Shown: in pieces, positions 43,893 to 61,185 of the stretch
How the letters are laid out: each line of letters opens with the position of its first letter
How positions within the stretch are numbered: the first letter of the stretch is position 1
Origin: Epithemia pelagica
Lineage: Eukaryota > Protista > Bacillariophyta
Direction: 5' to 3'
NCBI GenBank assembly: GCA_946965045.2
Contig: OX337228.1
Span: 2,542,001 to 2,606,000, forward strand
DNA: 64,000 nt
Notes under the pieces: generated by a model
What the model was told of the DNA's origin: nothing
Database searches by the model: none
The model's input: the letters and a program-made list of their open reading frames with translations, nothing else
Position numbers and translations under genes: made by a program

Positions 43893-45287
43893 GATGCTTT
43901 GTCATCGATCGACTTTTGTGTCGCTGTTGAGGGAGAGGATGCAGGATGTTTGATCTTTTTTGTGAGGACAACAAGCAGATGCCCCCATGCCCAAATGCCC
44001 ATGCCCCATGTGCATCATCCATCATCCGTAATAAGTACACAAAAAAAGAAATCAAGCGAACCAACAAAGAAAACGGGTTTGAAAGTTCGATTGTCTGTTA
44101 TTATGTAGTTGCTAACTACTCATTCAAAGATTAAACACAACATACTCGATACTCGTACTCCTACAGGACTCATACTTGGATGTAGACTGCAGCCTGAAAG
44201 AAGATGCAAGTAATAGGCATAATAATACTCCTACGAAATAGGAATGCTCTTTGTCCTAGTAGTAAGTCCTCCTACTCCTAGGTAGCTAGGTAGGTGAAGT
44301 ATGAACTACTCCTATGAACTATGAACTACACTTCTCTACGAACTCGTATTCTCTGGAGAGAGTAATAGATCGATGTGATTGCGTCCATCAAAGCTTCTAA
44401 CTCCACAATTATGCAGTAGTAAGTAGTAAGTAGTATCGATTATCTATCTCATGTTTCTATTCTACAGCTTATTACTCATTTTAGCAGTATATTATGGCAT
44501 TTGGCAGTAATGCCTCGTTCGCCGATCTTTGTTCTACAATATTGTACGAGCTCTCAGCGGAAGGGTGAGTCGTGCTCGTGAATGGCGAGTGAATCAGATT
44601 GCACCCTTACCCATTCACGAGCAGGACTCAATCATCCGCTAGGGGGTAGATCGCGGATCTGGTCGCAAAAGAACGTTTCCGGATAACTATCAGGGGTAGG
44701 GTAGGGGTAGGTAGGTTAGCTCTAGCCTTGCCGACGAATACAATACGAGCGGTTCTCGTAACACTTCGCGCGCACGTTTCTCCAAGACCACGACCAGATA
44801 CTTTCAGAAACTCGTGACGTCACTATGAAGCAAACTGTGAGAAGCCTAATTTGTTAAATATAAGCTCGTCACATGATCGACCATGGCCTTTTCCGACCGT
44901 CTTGCTATTGAATGCCAATTTTGGCCCCAAAACGGATGCTCTACTGCTGTTGTAAGCCTAAGAAACCTTTCTACATAGAGCATAGAAGTCGTATCAACCG
45001 TTACAACAGAAGCAGATGCCAAGAAATCGGATGTAAACGACCCAATATTGTCGAGACTCCACTGTTCGCCAAAATATGAGCAAATTTTCATTTTCCACAA
45101 CTCGCCCACCTCGCCAGGAACATTCAAACTCTACAGATGTGAATAGAGCATAAACCTTGGTCGCATTTCAATCATCCGTTCCAAAGTGTTTTTTATATTC
45201 ACAACGTCACTCTTCTTGGTAATTGATGTCAATGGATGAGGTGCTATTTGTCTCGTAAACACTCTCCATTACAAACCATGTCGAGAG

Positions 45288-47692
45288 TTGAAGACCCAAG
45301 AGACAATGGCTGGTACGAGACAGCGTAAGAAGACGGAGAAAGGCTCTCAAGCCGCTCCAAAGAATCGAAAAGGACAACGTGGTACGAAGACGCCACCGCT
45401 CGTAGACTCCCCCTCTCCGAACAAGAAGAAACAGAAGGTACACCGTGCGAGAAGATGCAACATGAAGCAACCGTCCCCAAATCTCCAAACCCGTAGTAAA
45501 CGCAAGGAGTCAGGTGTCACCTGTGCGAACAACACAGTTGAATCGGATCGCTTAGCCAAAGTGATTGCGGACTTTAAAGACAGCAAGAAGAAGCCTTGTT
45601 CAGTCTTTGGTCTTGATAGGAGACAGCGATACCGAGATTACTTCTTCTGTTTTGAATGTCACGAGGCCGATACCCGCGAGCAACTCTATCCTAATCTCGT
45701 CACCAACAGAAAAGCAGAACGTGGGGCGTACACTTGTACTGCCAACCATAAGAACATGATCCATCCAACTGATAAGGTCAAGGTGATTGTCAAAAGGAAA
45801 CATCTTCGAGCAACCACCAAAACAATCAAGGAGAATATAGTTGCCAAACTCGAAGATCGATCTTCCAAGAAACATGATGACGACACAAAGTCTCCCCCAG
45901 CCCAGTCTTCAAATGGTGACGACCCTGAGGAATCCTCCAAACCAATGTCCCCAAGGGCACGAAAGTGCCTCAAAAAATACTTACACAAGACGAGCAAGTC
46001 CAAAACCATTGGCTTCACGAGCACCATCCAAGACAAAACCAAGGACCCACCCAAGGAATCGACCTCTGTCAATGAGATTACCACCCTGCAGGCAGTTCCT
46101 TCAACACCACCCCGACTTGAGAATCATCGAGTCGTCCAAGAACCCATACTTCAAGTCGACGACTCATTGGACCTCAACAAAATGGACAAGGCATATTCCA
46201 AGAATGAAAAGGATGGAAAAGACTTTCCTCTTCATGAAACGGACAATGATCAGGGATTGATGACTAGCAATGCAGACAATGACTCTCCGAATGACTTACT
46301 GTTGGACGCAGCTAATGATTCTGATAGACCAGAGCTCAGCAATACCAGGGAACAAGGGTCTGAGTCAGCTCGCACGACGGACAAAGGCTCAGAGCCCGAT
46401 CCCAATGAACAAGGCTCAGAGCCCGCTCCCAATGAACAAGTCTCAGAGCCTGCTACCGATGAACAAGACTCAGAGTCCGCTCCCAAAGACCACGGCTTTG
46501 TGATTATCTCACGTCTGAAAGCAGAACTTGAAAAGGCACGTAATGAGAGCAACAAGATGAGACAGAATTTGAAGGATTCTAAAAGGGAAGTCAAGAAGCT
46601 TACAAACAAGGCGAAGTACTGGAAAGACTTATACAAGGCCAAAGGCGTGCCCATCAAGTTACCCAAGTCTGTTGGAAGGAAGGACAATGCTCACAAGGTG
46701 GCAGAGCATATTCGAATGTCAGTCGAGACTTCTGTGGATCCCCTTCAAGAAGACAGTTTGGGAGCACAAACCTTTTTCACAGATCTGACGACAATGCTGT
46801 TGGACCCTTCACTCCACAGTGGACAAAGTCGACGCTGCGCATACGATGTGTTTCGCCAACATGTTAGGAAGCACATCTACACTCCTCACAATGTGTTGCG
46901 ACAGATGGACTTACAGGGGGGTGCCTTAAACTTTCGTAACATAGAACTACTACGAGACATTGAAACCAAGGGTAAGCCCTGGCAGCAAACACTCTTACCA
47001 AGTACGTCTGTACTACAGGATTATGCCAAACAAGTCGAGAAGTTTGGGGAAAACTTCTGTCCCTTTAGAATGTTCAAGAATAAAAAAGATGGGAGCGAAG
47101 GGTTTGCATTCAGGGCTGCAGATGTCATTGTAGGAATACTCATGGCCGGAGATGTACTCCAGACAGAAGCATTGTTACGCTCCATCAAACTGGCCCAATC
47201 AATGGATGGAGCACTCTTCACTAAAAACTTGGGCCATACGCTGGGTGGTCTAAAGTTCAATGATGAATCCAGTGAACTACGTCAATCCAGAAACGGTGTA
47301 TTTCCAGTACTATGTGTTTGTACAAGAGAGTCGAAGGGAATTATCCGAGGCATTTTCTACAGGATGATTAAAGAAATACAAGAGGCAGCTGACTTTGTGG
47401 TTCCTCGTCACTTTGGTGTTGAGGCTATTGTAGTTAGTACCAATTGCGACATGAGTTGCGAGTGGAAGCTGGCTGCCCGCGGCGGTGCAGCAAGGCAAGT
47501 CACTTACCCGTGTGCCAAATGCGCAGTGAAAAGCGGGGCCCTCCACTTGCAAAGCCAGCCAACTCACTCCTGTTCTTGGTGTCAACAGCTTGGACACTTG
47601 GCACGGCCTAATTGGATATGCCGGCATCACCGAATCTGTACAAAGGAGGTAATTTCCCAGCTTCGGGAAGAAGTAGACCTTATGGAGAAGAA
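45288..47692 (+). CDS. RAG1/Transib-like DDE transposase, 5' part (interrupted by LINE)
   Basis: Cys/His finger (CFEC...C...H), then SMDG (D1), FPVLCVCTRES, TNCDMS (D2) and YPCAKC, in the same order as in the RAG1 core. Confidence 0.75.
46350..46490 (+). repeat. 27-bp coding tandem repeat (EQGSEPAPN-like, ~5 copies)
   Basis: Units like gaacaaggctcagagcccgctcccaat. Confidence 0.85.
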
Positions 47693-47789
47693 ACTTTTTC
47701 GATGTCGATCTTTTTGCTAAGCCTACTACTTATGCCTATAGTCCCTTCCTACTAAGTTCTACGTGTGATCCTACGTGTGTGTTCTCACC

Positions 47790-50564
47790 ATGACGAATCG
47801 ACGTTCTCCTCCTACCGCGGGAGGTAGATCCCATGGTCGCAACCATTCGTCGTCCTCTCCTTCAGCGTCCGCCACTGTGCAATCGAATGTGACTCAATTC
47901 TTTTCAGCGACACCCGCCCAGGCCACCAACTCGGCATCTCGTTCTGCTGCGACGTCGCGTCGTCCTACCGAAACCCCAGCGGCTTCCTCTGGTCCGGCCT
48001 CCGGTCCACGCATGAGTTCTTCGACGGCGCCCGCTCCGGCGTCGACAATTCGACCGACTTATGCTGGAGTGGCGGCCATGGAAGTCGAATCCGGTCCTTC
48101 TCGAGAGGATCCAGCTGATCCCATTGTCGACTCCTCCCCCCGTCGTGGTATTGCTCCGGACTCGATCCGCCCGCCCCGTTCGCCTCCTAATTCCAGGGCC
48201 CGCCGGTCGCAATCTCAACAACGGTCGCCATCGGGACGTGGTTCTCCGAGCTCTCGTCGGTCTCGCTCCCATCGCTCTCGCAATCGTTCGGCACCCACGT
48301 CTCCGGCTACCACCACAGCCACGCCTTTGGCTCCTTTGGTTCCAGGTCGAGGTGGTCGCGCCCCGGTGGGTAGCGTTTCATCGAGCAGCGGTCGTGGACG
48401 CGGCCGTTCCATCCAGGAATCTCGGACCCCCCGATCGGCTTCTATGCAGGATGTTCCCATGGCTGAAGCTCGACTTGTGTCCGACGGAGCTACGACGTGC
48501 TCCCAGAGGGCTGCTCCAGCGGTGGCGATGGCCAGTGTTCTGGCACCCAATCCCCCCGCTCGTCCCCCCGCCTCGTCGTCCCAGTCTAGTCGTGAGCGCA
48601 CTACTCAGAACTCGTCCCAGACGTCTCCCAATCGCGGTGGTTTTCAAGCCCTTTTGGATGCTGAAGTACAGGCGCTTCAGGCGGAGCGCAATCAACAAGC
48701 TGAAGATACGGCTTCCGGTGGGGCTGCGGCCACGGCCCCCTCGGCCCCTGGCGCGGATACGGACATGTCCGACGCGGCGACTGTTGCCACCGACAACACG
48801 GAGGGCTCCTTCGTTCAAATGTTTGTCCACCAACCGGTGGCTGCGACGGTCCCCACCTCGGTGGGCATTGCCCCTCGTCCCAGACAATCGACGGCTCCTC
48901 GTCCCCCGGGTCCGACGCTCCAATCCACCAATCCGTATCTTCGTACAGAGCTTCTTCCGCCGCGCTCGGTCGAGGCCCGTTACGAGATGCGGCTTCAGCT
49001 GGCGCCTTCTAGTAATGCCGACGCGGAACTCCGGTCTACCTTGGTAGCGTTTTTTGCCAAATTGCGGGAGTACGATCCTACTCTCGTCATTCATCCATGG
49101 TCGGATCGCGACAACACCACGCAACAAAACGGTCAACGCCAGTGGCGCTCCCTGGCCAAACCCGATGATATCCCTGCTACTATGGATGGGATGAGGCGGT
49201 ACTTCCCGCGCGCTTTGCCTAAACCCACTGGCGGCTTCGTCTACCCCTCCATTCATCTCGGGCATTCCCGGCCGTTTACGTCACTCAAGCACGACCTATC
49301 CTGGTGGTTTCAAAGCGAGCGCCATGGTTTGTGGCCCAGACAACTACAATGTGAATCTACCTATATTGTGGGTTGGGGTTTGTACTCGCTACAATCCATT
49401 GATGTTCCGGCCCTCAAGCGGGAACTGGAAGAAGCGCTCGGATTCCCTCTCGGGCTGCGTTGGCGTACCATCCAAACTGGTCAAGCGGGTGCCATTCCTC
49501 CAGACCAGATGGCGAAGGCTCTCCATTTTGAGGTCAACCGTCTCCACAAGCGTGAGGCTAAACGTCGTCTGGCTGACCTGTATGCCCGTACTGCGACGCG
49601 TTTCCCGTTAGGGATCAAAATGCGTCTCGTGTGGCCTTTGTCGGATGTCATGAACCTTCGGACTCGCGAGAAAGTGGCTGCCCTCCGCCTTCGGCAACTC
49701 CAATTCTGCACCCACATGAGGGGCATGCGGACATGGGAGTTACACTCGATCGACCAGCCGGATTCGGAAACCAATTTAACCCTCCGCGCTCGATTGATGG
49801 AAATTCGTAGTACGGTTGATGGTCATCAGTTATTCCATTCGGTGGACCCCAGCCATATTGGGGAGGGAGCCATGCAGTTTGCCTTTCACCCCGCCCGCGA
49901 ACAAGAAGCCCGGGCGATGATTATCGCTCTCATTCCATATCTACGTTGGAAGATGGCTGAAGAAGTGCCTAACTTGTCGGATGTTGCTCGTGAGCGTTTT
50001 TTCGCCAAAACTCTTTACTGCCATTTTAGCAAGGATGCCCTTGATCGAGCGGTGGGTGCCGTGTGGAATCCCACCACCATGACCGTGGATTCCCCGGCAG
50101 ACGACTACAACGGTTGGGTCTTTGATTCGGGCGATGGCGAGTTGGATTGTTCTGGCTTTGGCGACGACGCCACTCCTGCCTCGACTTTGACGACGGCTAT
50201 TACGTCTCCCCTTGTTCGGCCCCACGACGCTGCCGGGGATCAGGACAGTGTTTCTACCTTGCCCCAAGGCACCTCGCTGGCCTCTACTGCTAGCACTGGT
50301 TCGCAATCTACCACCAATCGTGGCCCACCCGACCCCGGAGTGGGCCCGTCTGCGGCCACTACGGCCTCGTCGATTTCCTCTCCCTCGGATCATCTTTCCC
50401 AGAACCCTAATCTTCAATCGTTTTTGACTTCTTTGACCTCTCTGCTCTCCACGTTACCCGACTCGGCGCAGACCCAAGACCTTCGCTCCCAGCTCGCTTC
50501 TTTGACCTCGGCTTCTTCCGCTTCCCCGTCGACCCCGCCCTCGGCGACGGGGCAGGGCCATTAG
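47790..50564 (+). CDS. LINE ORF1 protein
   Basis: Long intact ORF ~97 bp after the element start; low-complexity termini around a globular central region. Confidence 0.85.
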   Translation: MTNRRSPPTAGGRSHGRNHSSSSPSASATVQSNVTQFFSATPAQATNSASRSAATSRRPTETPAASSGPASGPRMSSSTAPAPASTIRPTYAGVAAMEVESGPSREDPADPIVDSSPRRGIAPDSIRPPRSPPNSRARRSQSQQRSPSGRGSPSSRRSRSHRSRNRSAPTSPATTTATPLAPLVPGRGGRAPVGSVSSSSGRGRGRSIQESRTPRSASMQDVPMAEARLVSDGATTCSQRAAPAVAMASVLAPNPPARPPASSSQSSRERTTQNSSQTSPNRGGFQALLDAEVQALQAERNQQAEDTASGGAAATAPSAPGADTDMSDAATVATDNTEGSFVQMFVHQPVAATVPTSVGIAPRPRQSTAPRPPGPTLQSTNPYLRTELLPPRSVEARYEMRLQLAPSSNADAELRSTLVAFFAKLREYDPTLVIHPWSDRDNTTQQNGQRQWRSLAKPDDIPATMDGMRRYFPRALPKPTGGFVYPSIHLGHSRPFTSLKHDLSWWFQSERHGLWPRQLQCESTYIVGWGLYSLQSIDVPALKRELEEALGFPLGLRWRTIQTGQAGAIPPDQMAKALHFEVNRLHKREAKRRLADLYARTATRFPLGIKMRLVWPLSDVMNLRTREKVAALRLRQLQFCTHMRGMRTWELHSIDQPDSETNLTLRARLMEIRSTVDGHQLFHSVDPSHIGEGAMQFAFHPAREQEARAMIIALIPYLRWKMAEEVPNLSDVARERFFAKTLYCHFSKDALDRAVGAVWNPTTMTVDSPADDYNGWVFDSGDGELDCSGFGDDATPASTLTTAITSPLVRPHDAAGDQDSVSTLPQGTSLASTASTGSQSTTNRGPPDPGVGPSAATTASSISSPSDHLSQNPNLQSFLTSLTSLLSTLPDSAQTQDLRSQLASLTSASSASPSTPPSATGQGH

Positions 50565-50703
50565 TCCCTCCACCTCGTCCCGGCGCTCGCCCCTTACGAC
50601 CCGGGACACCGAGAGGACTGCAATAAGGCCCCTTTCCTCCCCCTCTGTCTCTGAGGAGTGGGGGGACCCCCTAGCCACTTCTCCATCAGATCAAATTCTC
50701 CGT

Positions 50704-53700
50704 GTGGTGGCGCAAAATGTGTCTGGTCTGCCCCTGCAGGCTACACACCCCAAATACGCGGAACTCCAAGCTTTTATCCTTGACAACAAAATCGATGTCC
50801 TGTGCCTTTCGGAACTAAATATTGCCTGGCACAACCTACAAGAAGAACAACAATTCTCCCATTTAGTACGCCCGTGGTTTCAGTCTACCTTCACCAAAGT
50901 AGCGTGGCACACTGACCGCGATTGGTCCTCCCCTTTTCAACGCGGTGGCGTGGGTTTGTTGGTCCGGGATAGTCATACAGGGCGGGTGTGTGGGTCGGGC
51001 AGTGACCCGTCCGGCCTTGGCCGGTGGGTCTGGGTGCGCTTACGGGGTCACCATGGCTCCTTATTACGCATTGTCAGCGCGTATCGCCCGGTTCTCAATC
51101 CCCGTGACGCGGGCTCAACGTGGAATCAGCACTCTCGGGTTTTTGAATCTTCCGACCCTCCCCGACTTGGGGACCCACGGCAACTATTTCTCGACGACCT
51201 CCAGGTGATGCTTCAGTCGGCCTACGATTCTGGGGAACAGATCTTGTTGGCCCTTGACGCCAACGAACCCCTGCTGTGGACGCCAGCCAACGTGGTCGAC
51301 CAAGCTATGGCTCCGTTTTCCATGTCTAACCTTCACTTCCATCGTCATGACAGAGCTACTGCACCACCGACCCACAACCGTGGGTCGCGACCTATTGATG
51401 CTATGTTCGGGTCGTCCCCCTCTTTGACGGGCAGCCAGTGCGGCTATTTCTCCTTTGGTGAGGCCCCTGGGGATCATCGCGCCCTGTGGGTAGACATCCC
51501 CTTGGTTGAGGTTTTCGGTGTCATGTCGGCACCTGTCACTCCACGCGTCGCACGTCGCCTCCAGTGTCGGGACCCGCGCGTTGTTCGTCGGTACCAAACA
51601 ACCCTCCACGAATTCTACTCCCAGCATGATGTCCAGCGCCGTACCTTTCTCCTGGAACAGTCAATAACTGGGCCACTCTCCGAGGAGCAGGCGCTGGAAT
51701 GGGAACGACTCGATGCTCTCCGTGTTCAAGGCATCTTTCTGGCCGACAGCAAATGCCGGAAACTGCGGACGGGTGCTGTTCCGTGGTCTCCTATCTTAGC
51801 GCATGCACTGGCAGTTCACCGTTTCTGGGACCGACTGTACACTTCGGCGATTGGGCGCCATGTGAGTCCGAAATTTCTCCGTCGGTTGGCCACCAAAGCC
51901 GGTCTTGAACTTCCCTCGTGCATGCCGGTGGATGAAATCCTGCTGCACAGGCAGACGGCTTGGGCCGAATACAAACGGCTCAAGCGAGATGCTCCCCACG
52001 CTCGGCAGGCCTTCCTCCATTCTCTGATAGACGCACGCGCCGCTGCGGGTTGGGATTCGGCCAAATCCGGCTTAGCCAACCTTCTCCGCCGTGAGCAACA
52101 GCGCCAGGATGCTCGGACTCTCCGCCAAGTTCTTGCTCCTACGTCTCGGAAAGGCCTTACAGAAGTTCAGCTCCCCTCGGGCCCCGGGGCCTGGGTGGAC
52201 GGCGAATGGGACGGTGCTTGGGTGACCAGGACAGACCGTGATGGGATGGAAACTGGTTGTCTCGCGGAAAACGATCGACGGTTCCGCCAGGCGTCTGACA
52301 CGGATCTTTTACAACCCGCCCTTGTTCAGGCTTTGGGGCCTACCGGTACTTCGGCCTATGCCGACCAGTTATTGACCTCGGGAGATCCTTCGCGTGTGGC
52401 TGATCTCATCTCCCCAGAAGCCGCGGTTTACCTCTCCCACCACCGCCGACCCTCTGTACTCGTCGCGCCTCATCCATTTGATCTTGACTTTCGTACTCCG
52501 GCTTACTGTGCCTCGTGGCAGAAGATGGACGAGTATACCGCCTCCGGTCCTTCAGGTCTTCATTTTGGCCATTTCATGGCTAATAGTCTCTCGCCGTCCT
52601 TGGGTTCGGTGGACGCCGCATTGGGCCGGATTCCCTCTATTTCTGGGTACCTTCCGGTCCGGTGGCAACAAGGGTTGAATGTAATGTTGGAGAAGAAGCC
52701 CGGCGTGGTTAAAGTCTCCAAGCTTCGTACCATTCTTCTGTACGAAGCTGACTTTAACCACAACAACAAGCTGATGGGGCGGTCGATGATGCGATACGCC
52801 GAGGCGAATTCCTTGTTAGCCCCAGAACAGTATGGCAGTCAGCGAGGCCATAGCGCCATTTACCAGTGTTTGAACAAGGTTCTAACCTTTGACCTTATGC
52901 GACAAACACGCCGTCCCGGTGGTCTGTGTTCCAATGACGCGAAGTCGTGCTACGACCGTATTGGCCATAGCTCGGCGGGGTTAGCCATGCAGCGCTGTGG
53001 TGTTCCTCCCTCTTTGGTAGACGCGTCGTTGGGGCCGATCCAACACCTTCGCCACTTTATTCGTACAGCGTATGGTGACTCAACGATATCTTTCTCGGCT
53101 GCTGGGCACTTGGTTCCGGTCCAAGGCATCGGTCAAGGCAATGGGGCTGGACCTGCAATTTGGGCGGTCGTCAGTACCCCGATTTTCAATGCCATGAGGC
53201 AACGCGGTTATGGTCTTTTTCTTCGCTCCCCCCATTCGGGCTCGTCCTTTTTGTTCGTGGGCTATGCGTTCGTGGACGACACCGACCTGGTCGTCGATGG
53301 TGTGTCTGCTTCCGCTACAGCGACTCAGGTGGCCGAGCGACTCCAAGCTAGTGCCAACTTTTGGGAGGCGTCTCTTCGGGCCTCTGGTGGTGCGTTGTCG
53401 CCGGCCAAATGCCACTGGTACCTTGTGGATCATCGTTGGCATGACGGCCAGTGGCGCTTGGTAGCTCCGGCTGACTCTCCTGCCACTTTGCGGATACGGT
53501 CACCTTCCGGCCGCGTAGTTCCTATTGAGCGCGTTTCTCCCATGGAGGCTCGCAAAACGCTCGGGGTTTGGACGGCGCCTGATGGTAGCATGAAAGCGGA
53601 ATATGCCTATTTGGAGTCGAAAGTTAAAAACTGGACCGAACGGATTCGCGTCAGGACCTTGCCCCACCACCTCGTCTGGTTGTCACTCCACACCGGTATC

Positions 53701-56307
53701 TTCAAAACGCTCCAATACCCACTAGCTGCTACGACGTTTTCCGAAGCTGAATGCCGATCACTTTGCTCTCCGCTACTGAAGATTGGCCTCAGTCGCTCGC
53801 ACATTGTTCGGTCGATGCCGCGGCCCGTGGTCCACGGTCCTCAGGTGACGGGTGGGTTTGCGGTTCCTGACTTGTACGTGGAGCAAGCTATTGCTCACCT
53901 GACGGCCTTCATCTCTTTTGGACACTCTGAATCGTCTATTACCGGCTTCCTCCTTCGCAACACCCTTGAGTTTCTGCAGCTGGAGTTGGGCACTGCAGGT
54001 AATCCCCTTGCGTTGAATTTCCAGGACTGGTCCAAATGCGCGGTGCCCACGTGGTGTACGAGCTTATGGTCTTTTTGTTCTCGCTACTCCGTCGCGCTCT
54101 CATCTCCCATTCCGGCCATCCCTATATTACGCGCGGGTGACTCCTTTCTCATGGCGGCTTTTTGGTCGGCTGGTATTCGCAATCCTACTGCCCTGGCCCG
54201 GCTCAACGCGTGTCGTATGTTCCTTCGAGCCTTTACTCTAGCTGATATCACTTCGGTTGATGGGCGGTATATCCTTCTGGACGCCTGGACTGGGTCCGGT
54301 CCGTGCAGCCGCCGACCGCATCTTGAATGGTGGCCTCGTTCCCCGCCGACATCTGCCCTTGCCTGGCATGAATGGCGGGAAGCCCTAATGTCTACCTTTG
54401 GGGTGGAGGCCCGTTTTCGTCGAGTGGTTACGACTCTGGGGTCTTGGGATGTCCCGTCCGTCCTTTCCTCTTTAGCGTTGTTTTGTCCCCATTGGAACCG
54501 ACTGTGCCTTCCCCGCGGGGATGGCATCTGGCAGCTGGCGATTGCACGCCCTTCTCTTCGTGGTCGCCCCGTTTTTGATCTCTCTCCAAAATATTTGTCA
54601 GTTGCTAGTTTGGCCTTGTATCCTCCCTTATTTGCAGCCGACATCTATGGCCCATCTGCATCGCCGACCCTTTTGTACACCGACTCAGTCCCTGTGGACC
54701 TGTCCGTCTTATTCCCCCCTCCCCCTTCAACCCCTGTCTCTTTTGATTGGGGTTGTCCGGTCTTGGCTCAAGTGACTCCGGTTTGGTTTATCCCGCCCTC
54801 GGACGCGGTGCTGTCGCGTATCGTGTCGGCCCTCCATTTGGGTCAGTTGGCTGCTTTTTCGGATGGCTCCGCTCGGGAATCCGTGGCTGGTACTTGTGCC
54901 TGGGGGATCGCGACGACTGATTCTGAGGTTGCCGTCCTCGCCGCCGGTTTTCGTATTCCTGGCCCAGTTGCGGCCCATTGTTCCTTTCGAAGTGAGTTGG
55001 CTGGAGTAATTGGGATCGCGTCCCTTTTGCGCTGTGTCGCCCGCTGGGTGCCCGACCTCCAGGGCACTGTCCATTTTGCAACGGATAGCGACTCGGTGTT
55101 GGGCAGAGTATTCCGTCGACCCACTCCGGCTACTGTCGCGGATCACAGTTGGGATCTGTTGTCCTACTGCCGCTTTCTTTTAGATGGCCTCCCAGCAATC
55201 CACTGGCATGGGTTCCACGTCAAAGGGCATCAGGACCAGGGTTCTGCTCCATTGGATATATGGGCGCGACGGAATATTTACATGGATTCATGCGCCTCGG
55301 CAGTGTACTCGCTTGTTTCTCCGAATTGCTTCCCGTCTTTTCCTACCGCGCCCCTCCCTTCGCTCTCTGTGGGCGAAAAGGAGGTGGTTTCCTCCCTGGC
55401 AGCTACCATCCGGGAACACGTCCTTCGGCCACCATTGGTCGATCATTGGCAGAGACTCCAACGATTTGGTCGGGCTCCCTCGTCGTCGGTTGATTGGGCT
55501 GCTCGCTCCCTCGCCCTCGGACAACTCCAACAAAACCGCCGCCACTGGGTGATCAAGCATACGGCGACTCGCTCGGCAGTGGGCGTCGAGATGGTTCGGC
55601 GTCGGAAGTGGCGCGACCCTCGATGCCCCCGGTGTGGCGCAGCGGTGGAGTCGGCGGACCATGTCCTTCAGTGTTCCCATCCGGAGGCCAAAGCTCTCTG
55701 GCATGAGGCATTGGCCCGCCTTGACCGATGGATGGCCTTACGGCACACCCAGCCCACGGTGGCACGGTTCATTTTAGACCATCTGCGCGCATGGGTTGAG
55801 GACACGGAGTACGTGGCTCCCTTTACGTCCGTTCCTGGTTTGCGGGAAGCGGTGACAGACCAAGCACAAATGGGATGGACGGCTGCAGTCATGGGATTTT
55901 GGTCGAATCACTGGGCAGAAATACAACAAGCGCATTATAGATTCCTCGGGAAAAGGTACTCCGGTCGACGGTGGCTTGCGTTGCTCATCCAGCAGATTTG
56001 GAACACCTCGTGGGACCAATGGGAACATCGCAACGCGATTTACCATGCCAACGAGGCTCTCCGCCTCCACGCGGAGCGTCAGGACGCCATCCGACTGGCG
56101 TATTCGGGCCCTCTCCGTTCTACTCCTCTTTTACGTCTCCTTTTTCGCCGTCCCTTGGAGCGCCGTCTCCAAGATCCGCCTCACATCCAACAGGCTTTTC
56201 TGCGTCGGCTTTCTACTCCGATTGTCTCTGCTGCTGCTCGGTCCCTGCGACGACAACAGCGCGCCTTTCGGTCCTTTTTCCTTCAGCCACGGGCTTCGTC
56301 TTCCTAG
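50704..56307 (+). CDS. LINE ORF2: AP endonuclease, reverse transcriptase, RNase H, CCHC finger (frame open from 50506; no ATG at start)
   Basis: APE QNVSG / LSELN / LALDAN / PIDAMF / GDHRAL; RT NDAKSCYDRI, QGNGAGP, FVDDTD; RH FSDGS...SFRSELAG...TDSDS...HVKGHQD; CPRC...DHVLQC. Confidence 0.95.
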   Translation: MVAQNVSGLPLQATHPKYAELQAFILDNKIDVLCLSELNIAWHNLQEEQQFSHLVRPWFQSTFTKVAWHTDRDWSSPFQRGGVGLLVRDSHTGRVCGSGSDPSGLGRWVWVRLRGHHGSLLRIVSAYRPVLNPRDAGSTWNQHSRVFESSDPPRLGDPRQLFLDDLQVMLQSAYDSGEQILLALDANEPLLWTPANVVDQAMAPFSMSNLHFHRHDRATAPPTHNRGSRPIDAMFGSSPSLTGSQCGYFSFGEAPGDHRALWVDIPLVEVFGVMSAPVTPRVARRLQCRDPRVVRRYQTTLHEFYSQHDVQRRTFLLEQSITGPLSEEQALEWERLDALRVQGIFLADSKCRKLRTGAVPWSPILAHALAVHRFWDRLYTSAIGRHVSPKFLRRLATKAGLELPSCMPVDEILLHRQTAWAEYKRLKRDAPHARQAFLHSLIDARAAAGWDSAKSGLANLLRREQQRQDARTLRQVLAPTSRKGLTEVQLPSGPGAWVDGEWDGAWVTRTDRDGMETGCLAENDRRFRQASDTDLLQPALVQALGPTGTSAYADQLLTSGDPSRVADLISPEAAVYLSHHRRPSVLVAPHPFDLDFRTPAYCASWQKMDEYTASGPSGLHFGHFMANSLSPSLGSVDAALGRIPSISGYLPVRWQQGLNVMLEKKPGVVKVSKLRTILLYEADFNHNNKLMGRSMMRYAEANSLLAPEQYGSQRGHSAIYQCLNKVLTFDLMRQTRRPGGLCSNDAKSCYDRIGHSSAGLAMQRCGVPPSLVDASLGPIQHLRHFIRTAYGDSTISFSAAGHLVPVQGIGQGNGAGPAIWAVVSTPIFNAMRQRGYGLFLRSPHSGSSFLFVGYAFVDDTDLVVDGVSASATATQVAERLQASANFWEASLRASGGALSPAKCHWYLVDHRWHDGQWRLVAPADSPATLRIRSPSGRVVPIERVSPMEARKTLGVWTAPDGSMKAEYAYLESKVKNWTERIRVRTLPHHLVWLSLHTGIFKTLQYPLAATTFSEAECRSLCSPLLKIGLSRSHIVRSMPRPVVHGPQVTGGFAVPDLYVEQAIAHLTAFISFGHSESSITGFLLRNTLEFLQLELGTAGNPLALNFQDWSKCAVPTWCTSLWSFCSRYSVALSSPIPAIPILRAGDSFLMAAFWSAGIRNPTALARLNACRMFLRAFTLADITSVDGRYILLDAWTGSGPCSRRPHLEWWPRSPPTSALAWHEWREALMSTFGVEARFRRVVTTLGSWDVPSVLSSLALFCPHWNRLCLPRGDGIWQLAIARPSLRGRPVFDLSPKYLSVASLALYPPLFAADIYGPSASPTLLYTDSVPVDLSVLFPPPPSTPVSFDWGCPVLAQVTPVWFIPPSDAVLSRIVSALHLGQLAAFSDGSARESVAGTCAWGIATTDSEVAVLAAGFRIPGPVAAHCSFRSELAGVIGIASLLRCVARWVPDLQGTVHFATDSDSVLGRVFRRPTPATVADHSWDLLSYCRFLLDGLPAIHWHGFHVKGHQDQGSAPLDIWARRNIYMDSCASAVYSLVSPNCFPSFPTAPLPSLSVGEKEVVSSLAATIREHVLRPPLVDHWQRLQRFGRAPSSSVDWAARSLALGQLQQNRRHWVIKHTATRSAVGVEMVRRRKWRDPRCPRCGAAVESADHVLQCSHPEAKALWHEALARLDRWMALRHTQPTVARFILDHLRAWVEDTEYVAPFTSVPGLREAVTDQAQMGWTAAVMGFWSNHWAEIQQAHYRFLGKRYSGRRWLALLIQQIWNTSWDQWEHRNAIYHANEALRLHAERQDAIRLAYSGPLRSTPLLRLLFRRPLERRLQDPPHIQQAFLRRLSTPIVSAAARSLRRQQRAFRSFFLQPRASSS

Positions 56308-56529
56308 CCCGGGTGGAGCGCCCCTATTCTCGATGTGTTGTGTTCTCGACTGTGTGCATTTTACTCTTTTTCACATCTTCCATTTCCTCCTTTTTTCATG
56401 TTTCCATTGGTCGACTTGTCCGGGCGGGATTCGTCTCCCCTAGGTACACAAGCGACGTTAAAGCCTTCGGCAGTTTATCGTTAAACTAATCATTGAGTTA
56501 TTATTATTATTAGACCTTATGGAGAAGAA

Positions 56530-57925
56530 TATGCCAAAGAAAGTAGGAAGTTTGGAGGAAGTTTGGATGAGCTCGAACCTAACACATCAGGAAGACCCCA
56601 GGAATACACCTACGCCCCAGAACCTAACCTCAACAAACTCAATTCACTTCAAGATAGAGACTGCGTCGCCTGATGACAGAAGAGTGTACAGTGAGAACTT
56701 GACCCATGACCTTGTGCTTCGCGACATGGATTACACAGGGTCCCTACAAGAGCGACAGTGTCGATTAATGGCACAACACATAAAGGAGTGGCATTATTTC
56801 CGAGCGTGTCAGAGTCTCTCCCAATTCGAGGACAGTCAGATAGATAGTGCATTGGTACTCGTCATGGATGTGGTTCCGTGCATCTTGCACATGGAGAATC
56901 GCATGGGGATTCTCATCCTGTCGCTTCTAGCCAAGGTTGGCCTTAGCAATGCCAAGGCAAAGAAGCTCCGATGGATGACTGCAACGGACAAGAGATCACA
57001 GGAAACTCGAATCAAGGCTTTCGTCGACATGATGAACAAGATCATGAACACTAAAATTCTTGGCACCGAGGAGCAACCAAGGCAATGGATCTTGCCTTAT
57101 GATTCAAAGTCGAAGTCCATTGCAATAATTTGCATGGATAATGTAAGAGTACGCAAGGTTGTTGAGAAAGTTGAGGAACTGATCAATATCTGCGTAGCGA
57201 CTAAGAGTGACCGGACACTTTGGAAATCTTGTTTGTCCTACTACAGGCAGGGTTATTCGATTCTTCTGCGTAAGGAAGATCTGGACAACAGTACAATTTA
57301 TCAATTCCAGGAGAAAATTGATCTCTTCTTTGACAAGTGGATAACCCTGCATGGAGAATCCGGTGTGACAAACTACGCCCATATGTTGGGAAGTGGGCAC
57401 ATCATGGAGTTTTTGTTGCACTACAAGAACTTATCCGCCCACTCCCAACAAGGGTGGGAAGGTAAGTGTGGACGAGCAGTCCATTTGTTTCTTTGTGGAT
57501 TGTTGGCTCACATGATTCTTCTATCAGCTTTCAACTCGCTTTTCAAGCGTTTCTATTTTACTAGGACGCAGAGGGGTGGGTCGACGAATCGTGGTTTGGG
57601 ACAGCAAACAAGATTGGAACCTATTGCAAAATGGTTGCAGAGACGACTCGTATTCATGGCAGGACATGAATACGAGTACATTCAGGAAACAAACAAAACA
57701 ATGACGGCGGAAGAGAAAGCGGCGTTCCAAAATTGGGTACAAAAAGAGAAAGGGACGATGGAGTTTTGTATGCCAATTGACAAGCAGTCAACTGGGACGA
57801 GGTTTGATAGTGACGATGACTGGGACGTGGGGGTTGGTACAACTGGTGTTTCTGGAGTTCGTGCCAGTGGAGAAGCAGAATTGGATGATGAGTTTTGGTA
57901 CGATTCTTCTGACGAGAGTCAATAA
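56530..57925 (+). CDS. RAG1/Transib-like transposase, 3' part; intron 57462-57527
   Basis: In-frame continuation (MEK-N-MPKK) after removing the LINE. Motifs VPCILHMENR, CMDNVRVRK, GVTNYAHMLGSGH and HSQQGWE-A-FNSLFKRF. Confidence 0.78.
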
Positions 57926-58008
57926 GGGAGGACGGGAGAACGAAATGCATAGTGAGAATACTACTACAGGAGTAATGAATACATATAAGAATCGATCGAG
58001 TCAAACTA

Positions 58009-59478
58009 CTAGTTATAGGCATTGATGAGTTCGAGTATGTCTTCATGTGAGAGAGTCTTATCCACACTCTGATGTTTAGGGGGGTTGTCATTGTCGTACA
58101 GTTTCCCTGCAATAACCCGAGACGTGATTTCATGGAGCTCGGTCTCTTGGTGACGAGATATCTGGATTACCTTGTAAATGGTTCCCTCCTTGTCATAGAT
58201 GTCTCCAATCGAGATGCCTATGTCCAAAGGTGCATTCGGGTCGGGGGTTGGTGGTTGCTTATGAGACATAGTGTTCTCATAATTCTCCTTCACTCTACCT
58301 TCAACTATGTTCTTCAGATGGACAGTCGGTGGATCGTGCATGAGAGAACCATCTCTCTTAGTTCGGTAGCAGTATTTGTTGTACCCGACAGTGACTCGGG
58401 TATTCAGTGGGGAGAAAGCAATGTCCACTCCGTTCCCACGGAAAAGACGTTTGAATGGAGGTTCTTCGGGAAGTTCATCGCTCTGGGAATCACGGCCACG
58501 AACCAATGTCACACAGTGTCCAGAGGACAAGACAACTCCTTTCGGACCATCAGCTAGGCGTGGACGATGCTCGGTAGAGCCATATGTACAGCTGATTCCA
58601 AGAGTCTGACGGAGAATCTCGACGTCACTTGAAGTTTCAAAGCGAAGAACGCCCAGTTTGAAAGAAAACTTGAGTTTCTTGCGGGTCAGTAGATAATCAC
58701 TGTCTTGGAAAGATTCGGATTGGTAAAAAAACTGGCATTTCGAATGGAGGGATTCTTTTGTTACAATAGCCAAGTAGTTGAACGTTTCCATAGGTATATG
58801 GCCGATGGACAAGGACGATAATTCTTCCGACTCTGCTAGGCTGGTTCGTCTATTCAATGTCTTCGTGATGGCCTTGCGGATCAGATACAGGCCGCGCCAA
58901 ACAGATTCATGGTAACAGCGTTTACCTCCCACGAGATGATCCATGGCCAATCTTCCAGTAACATCATTTGGGAAACAAACACTTTCATCTTCGGGCAAGT
59001 TGGAAAGGAAAGTTGAGCTGTCACGAAAGTGATCATTCTTTTGCTCAAGAAATCGTAGAACAAAAACATTGGTGAGACCGTGTGCCCACGAATTCTTTGG
59101 ATCGGCAATCTCTGTTACCGAAAATACAAAGGCAGGATAGAGAATGTCGCAGGTTTCTCCAGGGGTCACAGAAAGGAAATCAGTCGATTGATACAGTTCT
59201 GTATTGAGACTGCCAGGAGAGCCAAAGGGAATCGGGCGATGATGATGCTTGGGTAAGTCAGGGAGTCTTTCATTCTTTTTCAATGGAAATAACGGGTAGA
59301 ATAGCCGGAGATGAAATCCATTTTGCGTGCGGCGTTTGATCCGACAAATAGTTGTAGTACCCGGCTCTTGTTTCCAAAGTTTGGCATGAACAAAACTCCC
59401 AACACGAAGACAGTCGTCAAGATGATTTACGTAGAGAGGAGGTTGGTTGATGTGAGCACAAAAGATGTTGGGCGACAT
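58009..59478 (-). CDS. Unknown ~490-aa protein, tail-to-tail with the RAG1-like gene
   Basis: Uninterrupted ORF with ATG at 59478; its stop lies 83 bp from the transposase stop. Confidence 0.8.
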   Translation of the reverse strand: MSPNIFCAHINQPPLYVNHLDDCLRVGSFVHAKLWKQEPGTTTICRIKRRTQNGFHLRLFYPLFPLKKNERLPDLPKHHHRPIPFGSPGSLNTELYQSTDFLSVTPGETCDILYPAFVFSVTEIADPKNSWAHGLTNVFVLRFLEQKNDHFRDSSTFLSNLPEDESVCFPNDVTGRLAMDHLVGGKRCYHESVWRGLYLIRKAITKTLNRRTSLAESEELSSLSIGHIPMETFNYLAIVTKESLHSKCQFFYQSESFQDSDYLLTRKKLKFSFKLGVLRFETSSDVEILRQTLGISCTYGSTEHRPRLADGPKGVVLSSGHCVTLVRGRDSQSDELPEEPPFKRLFRGNGVDIAFSPLNTRVTVGYNKYCYRTKRDGSLMHDPPTVHLKNIVEGRVKENYENTMSHKQPPTPDPNAPLDIGISIGDIYDKEGTIYKVIQISRHQETELHEITSRVIAGKLYDNDNPPKHQSVDKTLSHEDILELINAYN

Positions 59479-60304
59479 GGTTGCGATGTATGATATGATA
59501 ATCAATTCGGTGATCGTCTTTTAGGCATGATCGTTTGGTTGTTGCATTACATGCCGATCCGGTTGGAGGGTGTTGCATGCAGGGGATGTTGAGCGGTTGA
59601 GTCCTCCAATGAATGAGGATGATCCATCCGAGATGGTCAATGCCAGTGAGACAAAAAGAATCATGGATGGACATCGTTGAGTTTTTATATATAAGAGAGT
59701 GTGGTGAGGCCAAAGACTTTGTTTAAGCGCGCCGGGTGATATTTTTAAGAGCGAGCCTACCATTTTGGTCAGGAATGCACGTGTGGGTAGAAAAAAGGTT
59801 ACGACAACCGGTCGTATTGATCCCGGCACTCAATGGCTTTCTTTATTGCATTGGAAGGATGCTTGGTGAGTTTTGCTATTACTTGGAGCAGGATTGAAGC
59901 AAGGCAATGCGATCCTATCGTGCGATCTGAGATCCTGGCATGTGCCACTAGCCACTACACTTGGAGTGACGGAGCGAAAACAGGCTAATGTAAAATGACA
60001 GTCACTTGACAATCTTTCGTCGGTCCTCCGCGGTTTCCAATCACTGTCAGCGATAGTTCGTGGATGGTGGGACGCCAAGTCCGAGTTACGGAACTGCTAG
60101 ACTGCTCCCAGAACAATGCTACGTACGTGATGTTGCATGTGGCTCTCTCTGGAGCAGCAGGGGTTAGAGGTTAGAGCGGTCGGTCGTTTTGGCTGTGAAC
60201 CGTAAGAAGACGCACCATAAAAAAGTGGAAGTCCCCGTTCTGGTTGTGTAACAGATATGAAACAAAGAGAGTAGTGTTTGTCAGACATGTATCGTCTAAG
60301 ACAA

Positions 60305-61185
60305 TCAGGTTTTGCGTTTCTTGTACGGATTGCGTTGTGGTGTCCTGCCCCCGCCCGGCAACGATCGAATAAACTCGTCCAGACGACTTTGTTCAGCTGG
60401 AGGGAACAAAGATGGTTCCGGGTTGAACACTTCCAATTTCCTTCTGTCGAGTTCCTCCCACATTCCGTCGAAGCGAAGTATGTCGTCCTGAGTGGTGTTC
60501 ACGACACAAAAAATGACTCCCAATTAAGATAGCGCGCGGCGGCGGAATAGTTGTAGCTTCCATAAACTGACAATGTGCTCGTCAAGAGCTGCTTCCGATT
60601 CATGCAGGTGAATGCATGGTTTGAAACGTTTGCCACACGGATCTCGATCGCATTCAAGCCTGCCAGCGGGGAACCGGTTTCTTTTGTAGGTGGAATGTTG
60701 TCAATGAATTGCTTGATCATTGTAAGAGAATGCACCCTTGGATCCATAATAACCTTTACATCGCAGTACTTCCGGTAGTGAATCAACGCGTCAATTAAGT
60801 ACGGGCAAGACAGGCTGTACGCGTATAGCCGAACAGCTTCGGAAACAACAGGTTCTACGACGTCACCCCTGGCTGCTTTTCCATGCAAGACAGTCTCTTC
60901 CGATGAATGGAGTACCGCAAAAATCGCCCTGATGGGATGATCACCCGGAATGTCACTGGGATCTTGGTCTCTTTTGCGAGGTTCACAATGGAATCGATCA
61001 CCAGCTGAAACCGAAGCCAAACGGAGGCTCTCCAAGGATGGAATGAACCAACCCGAACCAATTGACATTTTCTTCTGCCTCATGGAGGCAAACATCTCCA
61101 CAACAGCGGCTTTCTCTTCCTCCTCGACAGCTCGCTGTTTTTCCAACTTGTATTCGTCAATTGTTTCTTCGTAGGAGAAGCTCAT
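60305..61185 (-). pseudogene. Phospholipase D-superfamily nuclease-like ORF (Nuc/Zucchini type); apparent -1 frameshift at T6 run ~60511-60516
   Basis: VRLYAYSLS..LIDAL...VKVIMD ... MNRK.LL....YGSYNYS.AAR..NWE. The C-terminal helix (..ILRFDGMWEEL) continues in the -1 frame. Confidence 0.7.

Follow-up and report, generated by a model that had tools for sequence, protein, structure and literature searches.

The DNA analyzed here, which we call the window, is a 64,000-nucleotide stretch of the genome of the diatom Epithemia pelagica (GenBank assembly GCA_946965045.2, contig OX337228.1, positions 2,542,001 to 2,606,000 of the forward strand), and all coordinates below count from its first letter. 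Positions 44741-59819 are occupied by a transposon that measures ~6.2 kb without the long interspersed nuclear element (LINE) nested within it. It is bounded by terminal inverted repeats (TIRs) and comprises a transposase gene, which the LINE splits in two, and a convergent gene on the minus strand. We conclude that it is very probably a two-gene cut-and-paste transposon with an Asp-Asp-Glu (DDE) transposase, apparently undescribed, and that it is most plausibly assigned, as a deep lineage, to the CMCT clade (CACTA/EnSpm, Mirage, Chapaev, Transib/RAG1, Plavaka, ESTA, and Lanisha). The two-gene family to which it belongs is abundant in the E. pelagica genome and also occurs in other diatoms. 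Its features are listed below, where L numbers designate fetched loci and P numbers family proteins.

44740, no strand: left target-site duplication (TSD) of 1 bp, an A; the empty allele reads GCCGACGAAT joined to 59820 (A TCCCGG)
44741-44762, plus strand: left TIR, CAATACGAGCGGTTCTCGTAAC, with conserved counterparts on the left side of L001, L003, L004, and L005
45306-47692, plus strand: 5′ part of the transposase coding sequence (CDS), an open reading frame (ORF) with its ATG as in P0029, running through residue 795 and two bases into codon 796; it specifies a basic N-terminus, a Cys/His finger (~45597-45750), an acidic linker, a coiled coil, and an RNase H-like domain that includes D634 and D715, CxxC, and a second Cys cluster
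47205-47207, plus strand: predicted first catalytic Asp codon, D634 (SMDGA), in the column of D484 of P0016 and on a beta strand in the structural model
47448-47450, plus strand: predicted second catalytic Asp codon, D715 (TNCDMS), in the column of D565 and directly after model strand 300-305
47511-47522, plus strand: CAKC, candidate ZnC2 pair C736 and C739, 21 residues past D715, equivalent to the invariant C586 and C589
47674-47692, plus strand: left copy of the LINE TSD, present singly in L001 and L002
47693-56510, plus strand: LINE (non-LTR retrotransposon), 8,818 bp, with ORF1 (47775-50564), ORF2 (50704-56307), and a TTA-repeat tail
56511-56529, plus strand: right copy of the LINE TSD, the identical 19-mer
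56530-57461, plus strand: middle part of the transposase CDS, with PCILH (C913, H916), a helical insertion, TNYAH..GSGH (H1080, H1086), and E1106
57458-57460, plus strand: predicted catalytic Glu codon, E1106 (SQQGWE), 20 residues past H1086 and on a helix in the model, with the intron starting one base later
57462-57527, plus strand: intron, 66 nt, GT..AG
57528-57925, plus strand: last exon, with AFNSLFKRF..RTQRGG.., a C-terminal domain, an acidic tail, and the stop codon
58009-59478, minus strand: partner gene, 489 aa, convergent with the transposase gene and inside the TIRs, with an N-terminal BAH-like beta domain predicted
59798-59819, minus strand: right TIR, whose reverse complement is CAATACGACCGGTTGTCGTAAC; 20 of its 22 bases are as in the left TIR
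59820, no strand: right 1-bp TSD, an A

The ORF list of the window gives two plus-strand frames flanking the LINE, one of 810 codons (45288-47720) and the other of 468 codons (56519-57925), and these are a single gene interrupted by the LINE. The spliced CDS (45306-47692, 56530-57461, and 57528-57925) comprises 3,717 nt, or 1,238 codons plus a stop, and has no internal stop codons. At the join, the protein reads EEVDLMEK/NMPKKVG, and the identical junction is found in two uninterrupted copies. One is P0029, a protein of 1,260 aa from the same assembly that is 99% identical to the window protein and reads EEVDLMEKNMPKKVG across the junction; the 5.9 kb contig that encodes it, L002, is 99.3-99.6% identical to the window. 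The other, L001, comes from the same ENA assembly and shares 98% identity with the window over 44738-47692 and 56516-59790. A preliminary description of the window had predicted that removal of the LINE and one copy of its TSD would fuse the two frames into a protein of ~1,240 aa, which agrees with the 1,238 aa found after removal of the 66-nt intron. It had also proposed looking for contiguous halves in other copies; they are contiguous in P0029, L001, and L002, and remoter homologues (39-71% identity) likewise contain both halves within one protein.

The intron at 57462-57527 is real, since homologous proteins and a contig of sequencing run X4 skip the same 66 nt. It runs from GTAAGT to CAG, is in frame and stop-free, and its 22 codons are precisely omitted in the homologues P0016, P0019, P0021, and P0022. 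The X4 contig (1,099 nt), from a run compared with the window over 56400-59850, matches 56821-57459 and 57526-57984 without a mismatch and lacks 66 nt with GT..AG ends. The kinds of runs X1-X4 are coded as unknown, and judging by the splice joint and the properties of the contigs, X4 is probably RNA and X1-X3 are probably DNA. The spliced joint was not found in the contigs of runs X1-X3, which are up to 509 kb long. Most public models of the family (P0002, P0003, P0005-P0015, and others) stop at ...QQGWEG; the intron, lying one base past the catalytic Glu codon, was left unspliced, and the deposited proteins therefore lack the C-terminal domain. For diatom genomics, this means that a large class of “hypothetical” genes are transposases, many of them truncated in the models at this conserved intron next to the catalytic Glu.

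The ends of the element were defined by comparison with other copies. The similarity of L001 to the window ends at 44738 and 59790. Near these points, 44741-44762 and 59798-59819 form an inverted repeat of 22 bp, and these two matches are the only ones in the window (0 expected by chance). The termini read 5′-CAATAC(G/C)...GTATTG-3′ in nine insertions for which both ends were available and in two further left ends, covering all the subfamilies fetched. All nine two-ended insertions are flanked by the same base on either side (a, c, t, g, g, c, a, c, and t, respectively), which would be expected by chance with a probability of ~4e-6. As these bases are identical rather than complementary, they lie outside the inverted repeat. 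We also considered a TA or 2-5-bp TSD and rejected it, given that only the single flanking base is repeated.

Contigs of runs X1 and X3 contain the empty allele, in which the left flank, ...GTAGGTTAGCTCTAGCCTTGCCGACGAAT, leads straight into 59820 (ATCCCGG...) with one A, and contigs with the filled junction are present in the same sample. The window insertion is thus polymorphic and its TSD is 1 bp, because empty and filled junctions both occur in the reads and the empty allele has a single A. For the L006 insertion, a paralogous empty site at L003:562-622 has flanks that overlap by one base; the corresponding junction for L001 was too diverged and of too low complexity to read. Given the polymorphic insertion and the spliced transcript, the diatom lineage appears to be active. 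In the literature on 1-bp TSDs, we did not find a DNA transposon with such a duplication.

Beyond the 22-bp repeat, the two ends are asymmetric, since a run of A residues, GAAAAAAGG on the plus strand (TTTTT-rich when reading inward), is found at 59790-59797, ~22-30 bp inward of the right end, and not at the left. Several subfamilies (L001, L003, L005, L006, and L011) share this run, which could be a subterminal binding site or a piece of the promoter of the partner gene.

A profile built from 24 homologues of the transposase retrieved 2,384 cluster representatives (E ≤ 1e-3) among 1.84 billion proteins, and named members come from Seminavis robusta, Epithemia clementina, and a Bacillariaceae metagenome-assembled genome. 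In alignment A3 (35 sequences; P0016 numbering), D484, D565, C586, C589, C606, C609, C623, H625, C764, H767, H931, H937, and E957, the last within Q-Q-G-W-E, are invariant or nearly so. Their equivalents in the window protein are D634, D715, C736/C739, C756/C759/C772/H774, C913/H916, H1080/H1086, and E1106, and Q-Q-G-W-E is invariant among both 35 and 61 sequences. The protein thus likely has a D-D-E triad accompanied by C2 and H2 candidates for the binding of zinc. An N-terminal Cys/His pattern is also conserved among the homologues. On these points the preliminary description was accurate: the codons that it had assigned to the triad do begin at 47205, 47448, and 57458, and the acids, the C2/H2 ligand candidates, and the N-terminal finger that it had listed are all present, with the residues invariant or nearly so in the 35 homologues. 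The spacing from the second Asp to the Glu is 391 residues. A further cluster, CxxC-x12-CxH (C756, C759, C772, and H774; 47571-47630), follows the ZnC2 pair, is specific to the family, and falls in a low-confidence part of the structural model (residues 305-331, pLDDT, the predicted local distance difference test score, <50). We know of no counterpart to it in RAG1.

The structural model was made with AlphaFold2 from residues 260-1050 of P0016 and a 24-sequence alignment, and has a mean pLDDT of 75. It places the first Asp on a beta strand, the second immediately after the fourth strand, and the Glu on a helix, as expected of an RNase H-like transposase. When the model was compared with the Protein Data Bank (PDB) by Foldseek, the top 49 matches were all RAG1, BbRAGL, or HzTransib (E down to 9e-9), and the next had an E-value of 0.05. 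These are the only strong matches among solved structures in the comparison that the preliminary description had called for, and the outcome that would have refuted its reading, a best structural match to hAT or P, was not observed. In VIA-align, which superposed model residues 131-749 on mouse RAG1 476-1005, the three gave Z-scores of 10-13, and a scan of 48,161 chains made independently of Foldseek returned six with Z ≥ 8, every one of them RAG1, BbRAGL, or HzTransib. The transposase core is therefore predicted to have the architecture of RAG1, i.e., pre-RNase H, RNase H, ZnC2, ZnH2, and C-terminal domains.

A different picture emerged from predicted structures. The best matches in the ESM Atlas were unnamed clusters from Cnidaria, Mucoromycota, and Rotifera; RAG1 clusters had TM-scores of 0.41-0.67 over 414-453 residues, and plant and arthropod clusters of PF02992 (Transposase_21), the domain of CACTA/EnSpm enzymes, had scores of 0.40-0.56 over 377-499 residues. 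Neighbors in the AlphaFold DB were similarly mixed. In these models, then, the RAG1-type fold apparently occurs in CACTA-type enzymes as well, and a fold-search match to RAG1 is not by itself proof of kinship with RAG or Transib. We know of no solved structure of a CACTA, Mirage, or Chapaev transposase.

Searches at the level of sequence gave no link to a known superfamily. Pfam was searched at E ≤ 10 with 44 members (the ORF halves, P0029, eight divergent proteins, and the 35 of A3), and no transposase family was matched, the only hits being coiled-coil noise. Neither RAG1 nor Transib was found among PDB sequences by phmmer with the two halves and the segment that spans the His pair and the Glu, and hmmsearch of all PDB sequences with profiles A2, A3, and A5 did not return RAG1, BbRAGL, or HzTransib at E ≤ 10. 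A word-indexed protein search with a 34-sequence core profile recovered members of the family and no annotated relatives from other phyla. The family was also not found in the literature on Transib, CACTA, or RAG1 in diatoms, a search that did not extend to Repbase, Dfam, or RepeatPeps, and in this sense the lineage appears undescribed.

The product of the partner gene has ten homologues, all of them ENA entries, and the loci that were fetched adjoin transposases of the family. The position of the partner is spanned in eight of ten other fetched copies, and all eight have the two-gene layout; the copies named as spanning it are L001, L002, L003, L005, L006, and L008-L011, with L004 truncated before this position and the contig of L007 ending just past the partner gene. 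A model of the protein (pLDDT 50 overall, and 75-85 at residues 15-170) was used as a Foldseek query, and the top 50 matches were all BAH domains, with weak E-values of 5e-3 to 3e-2. These matches suggest that the partner carries a BAH-like domain, a beta domain of ~150 aa at residues 15-170. A RAG2-like partner was considered and rejected, as the beta domain matches BAH and no propeller is seen in the model, which is poor overall; Pfam likewise gave no kelch match in the protein.

Our placement of the family in the CMCT clade is based on the following considerations. The clade has been characterized by C(2)C and H(3-4)H motifs, 5′-CA..TG-3′ ends, and TSDs of 2-5 bp (PMC12730594). The diatom transposase resembles its members in its DDE triad, in the C(2)C motif that follows the second Asp, and in the presence of a His pair located ~20 residues ahead of the Glu, and the element itself has 5′-CA...TG-3′ ends, a short TSD, and a second gene, as CMCT elements often do. 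Members of the clade are, moreover, led to RAG1 structures by remote-homology tools, ESTA having been directed there by HHpred (PMC12730594). Several points weigh against this placement. The TSD is 1 bp, below the stated range of the clade, and the His pair is spaced H-x5-H instead of H(3-4)H. No CMCT reference or Pfam model of the clade was matched at the sequence level, and the placement rests on predicted folds, the order of motifs, and the features of the ends. The modeled protein is P0016, a homologue 44% identical to the window protein, and the TM-scores reach just 0.4-0.67. For the partner, the BAH assignment depends on a low-confidence model and weak E-values. The family further differs from the rest of the clade in its extra Cys3His cluster, the 391-residue spacing from Asp to Glu, and its BAH-like partner.

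It is unlikely, in our estimation, that the element instead belongs to a classical CMC lineage (CACTA/EnSpm, Mirage, or Chapaev), e.g., a Mirage-like one related to nematode DUF1280. A nematode cluster of DUF1280 is indeed the closest neighbor of the transposase in language-model space (0.91; 188/256 features), the Transposase_21 clusters superpose over 377-499 residues as described above, and proteins longer than 800 aa in two-gene elements are found in CACTA/EnSpm, too. A two-gene layout and CA..TG ends are in fact common in CMC elements generally (PMC12730594). However, Transposase_21, DUF4218, Transpos_assoc, DUF1280, and DUF1258 all failed to match any of the 44 members, the ends are not CACTA, and the TSD is neither the 3 bp of CACTA/EnSpm nor within the 2-4 bp of the CMC lineages.

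The preliminary description had gone further and called the gene a RAG1/Transib-core recombinase hidden by a LINE. What stands of this is a DDE transposase gene so hidden, with its triad, its C2/H2 candidates, and a predicted RAG1-type fold; what is not supported is membership in the RAG1/Transib clan. We find it quite unlikely that the family is a genuine member of that clan, i.e., a divergent Transib- or RAGL-like transposon in which TSD length, ends, and partner have drifted. In its favor, the only strong matches to solved structures are to this clan (6PQN, 6B40, and 4WWX), over an alignment that extends from the dimerization and DNA-binding domain (DDBD) to the C-terminal domain (CTD). The D, D, and E occupy equivalent secondary-structure elements, and the spacing of 20 from His to Glu equals that of H942 to E962 in RAG1. 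After DUF1280, moreover, the language-model neighbors are arthropod RAG1_RNase_H and vertebrate RAG1, ahead of Transposase_21. Like ProtoRAG and other RAGL elements, the diatom element has two genes between its TIRs.

On the other side, three profiles of the family miss RAG1, BbRAGL, and HzTransib, whereas RAG1 and Transib are mutually retrieved by PSI-BLAST and share ten motifs (PMC1131882). CACTA-type predicted structures match about equally well. The specific motif equivalences to RAG1 that had been proposed are borne out at the level of order, spacing, and structurally aligned ranges, and their residue-by-residue correspondence is putative. The diatom protein has roughly double the length of a Transib transposase, its spacing from the second Asp to the Glu is 391 residues compared with ~254 in RAG1, and the Cys3His cluster is extra. 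Transib has a 5-bp TSD and a CACAATG heptamer of which the first three bases are invariant (PMC1131882); in contrast, the diatom TSD is 1 bp and the ends are CAATAC(G/C), with A as the third base, rather than a CAC heptamer with a nonamer, and the partner is not of the kelch-type RAG2 kind found with RAGL. The failure of these classical hallmarks counts against membership but is not proof, because such traits vary within true Transibs. According to a 2026 preprint, bona fide Transibs have TSDs of 5 bp, 3 bp, or TA together with varied termini, such traits should not override transposase phylogeny, and InterProScan can miss real Transibs.

The statement in the preliminary description that a RAG-like element has been reported in another stramenopile was right, and lends this alternative some further support. 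AanRAGL of the pelagophyte Aureococcus is an active transposon that carries RAG1L and RAG2L, duplicates 5 bp of its target, and has TIRs starting with CAC (Tao et al. 2022, PMC9435367), and Transib-like proteins occur in bacteria, fungi, and plants (PMC9435367). A RAG relative in a stramenopile would therefore not be new in itself.

Finally, it is extremely improbable that the likeness to RAG1 is a model artifact or a generic DDE resemblance and that the gene is of another superfamily such as hAT, P, or Kolobok. Matches to the P element (Z 6.3) and to Hermes (Z 5.1) did register in VIA-align, and a C(2)H motif after the second Asp is said, in work by Yuan and Wessler from 2011, to occur in several superfamilies, but RAG1-type structures score twofold higher over a whole-core alignment from DDBD to CTD, no Pfam hAT domain, hAT dimerization domain, or 8-bp TSD is present, and the C(2)C motif with an H..H pair is diagnostic of CMCT (PMC12730594).

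With a deep CMCT lineage as the preferred reading, a mechanism can be sketched in which the N-terminal Cys/His finger and the coiled coil would serve end binding and dimerization, respectively, D634, D715, and E1106 would carry out catalysis, and C736/C739 and H1080/H1086 would be the likely zinc ligands. The transposase would recognize the 22-bp ends and insert the element with a 1-nt stagger, giving the 1-bp duplication that is observed. Judging by the fold, excision may proceed via a nick and then a hairpin on the flanking DNA, as with RAG1 and Transib, and the BAH-like partner might read chromatin or target the element.

How RAG1 arose from transposons is a key question in understanding how immunity evolved, and to our knowledge the solved structures and known biochemistry are limited to RAG1, RAGL, and one Transib. 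The diatom family retains the architecture of RAG1 with three differences, namely, a 1-bp stagger, other ends, and a chromatin-reader-like partner. We tentatively suggest, as a reading that could well be wrong, that it is an undescribed, active, diatom-restricted lineage of the RAG1 fold within CMCT that inserts with a 1-nt stagger and acquired, independently, a BAH-type, chromatin-reader-like accessory. If true, RAG1-type cutters would have been joined to chromatin readers twice independently, the other case being RAG1 and the PHD finger of RAG2. As a distant outgroup, the family would also help to establish which of the properties of RAG (hairpin chemistry, the zinc site, and partner dependence) are ancestral to CMCT.

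The LINE that interrupts the transposase gene is bracketed by a 19-bp direct repeat, TAGACCTTATGGAGAAGAA, at 47674-47692 and 56511-56529. The TTA-repeat tail of the LINE makes the exact length of the TSD ambiguous (17-19 bp). Its two ORFs (929 and 1,867 aa) are both open, and ORF2 has an APE-type endonuclease and visible reverse transcriptase motifs. Pfam matched Exo_endo_phos (2e-4, weak) and zf-RVT (0.06) and gave no match to RVT_1 at E ≤ 1, the reverse transcriptase being highly divergent. The GC content of the LINE is 54-64%, compared with 43-49% for the host element. It is missing from the sister copies L001 and L002 (98-99.6% identical) and from contigs of runs X1-X3, where the loose end at 56511 is extended by what lies upstream of 47674 in the window; no second copy was found within the fetched loci. 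The LINE looks young, because both ORFs are open, the TSD is perfect, and it is absent from near-identical sister copies, and it is possibly active. Its insertion in codon 796 separates both Asp residues from the Glu and would leave this copy unable to make an active transposase; with its ends intact, the copy might still be mobilized in trans by intact ones.

At the right boundary of the element, one X3 contig leaves the TIR at 59819 and enters unrelated sequence, GTCATCTTAATGACATG..., and thus represents another copy at a different locus of the sequenced sample. An ORF of the phospholipase D (PLD)/Zucchini type at 60305-61185, which the preliminary description had assigned to the same cassette, lies beyond the right TIR and is missing downstream of other copies, so it does not belong to the element.

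The sister copy L001 has an insertion of its own, a nested long terminal repeat (LTR) retrotransposon of 6,519 bp (L001:15648-22166) with an ORF of 2,083 aa. Its LTRs are 159 bp each, 100% identical, and of the form TGTC...GACA. It lies 29 bp from the right end of the element, with GTAG on either side, and displaces the right repeat. The window copy and L001 have thus both been struck recently by retroelements.

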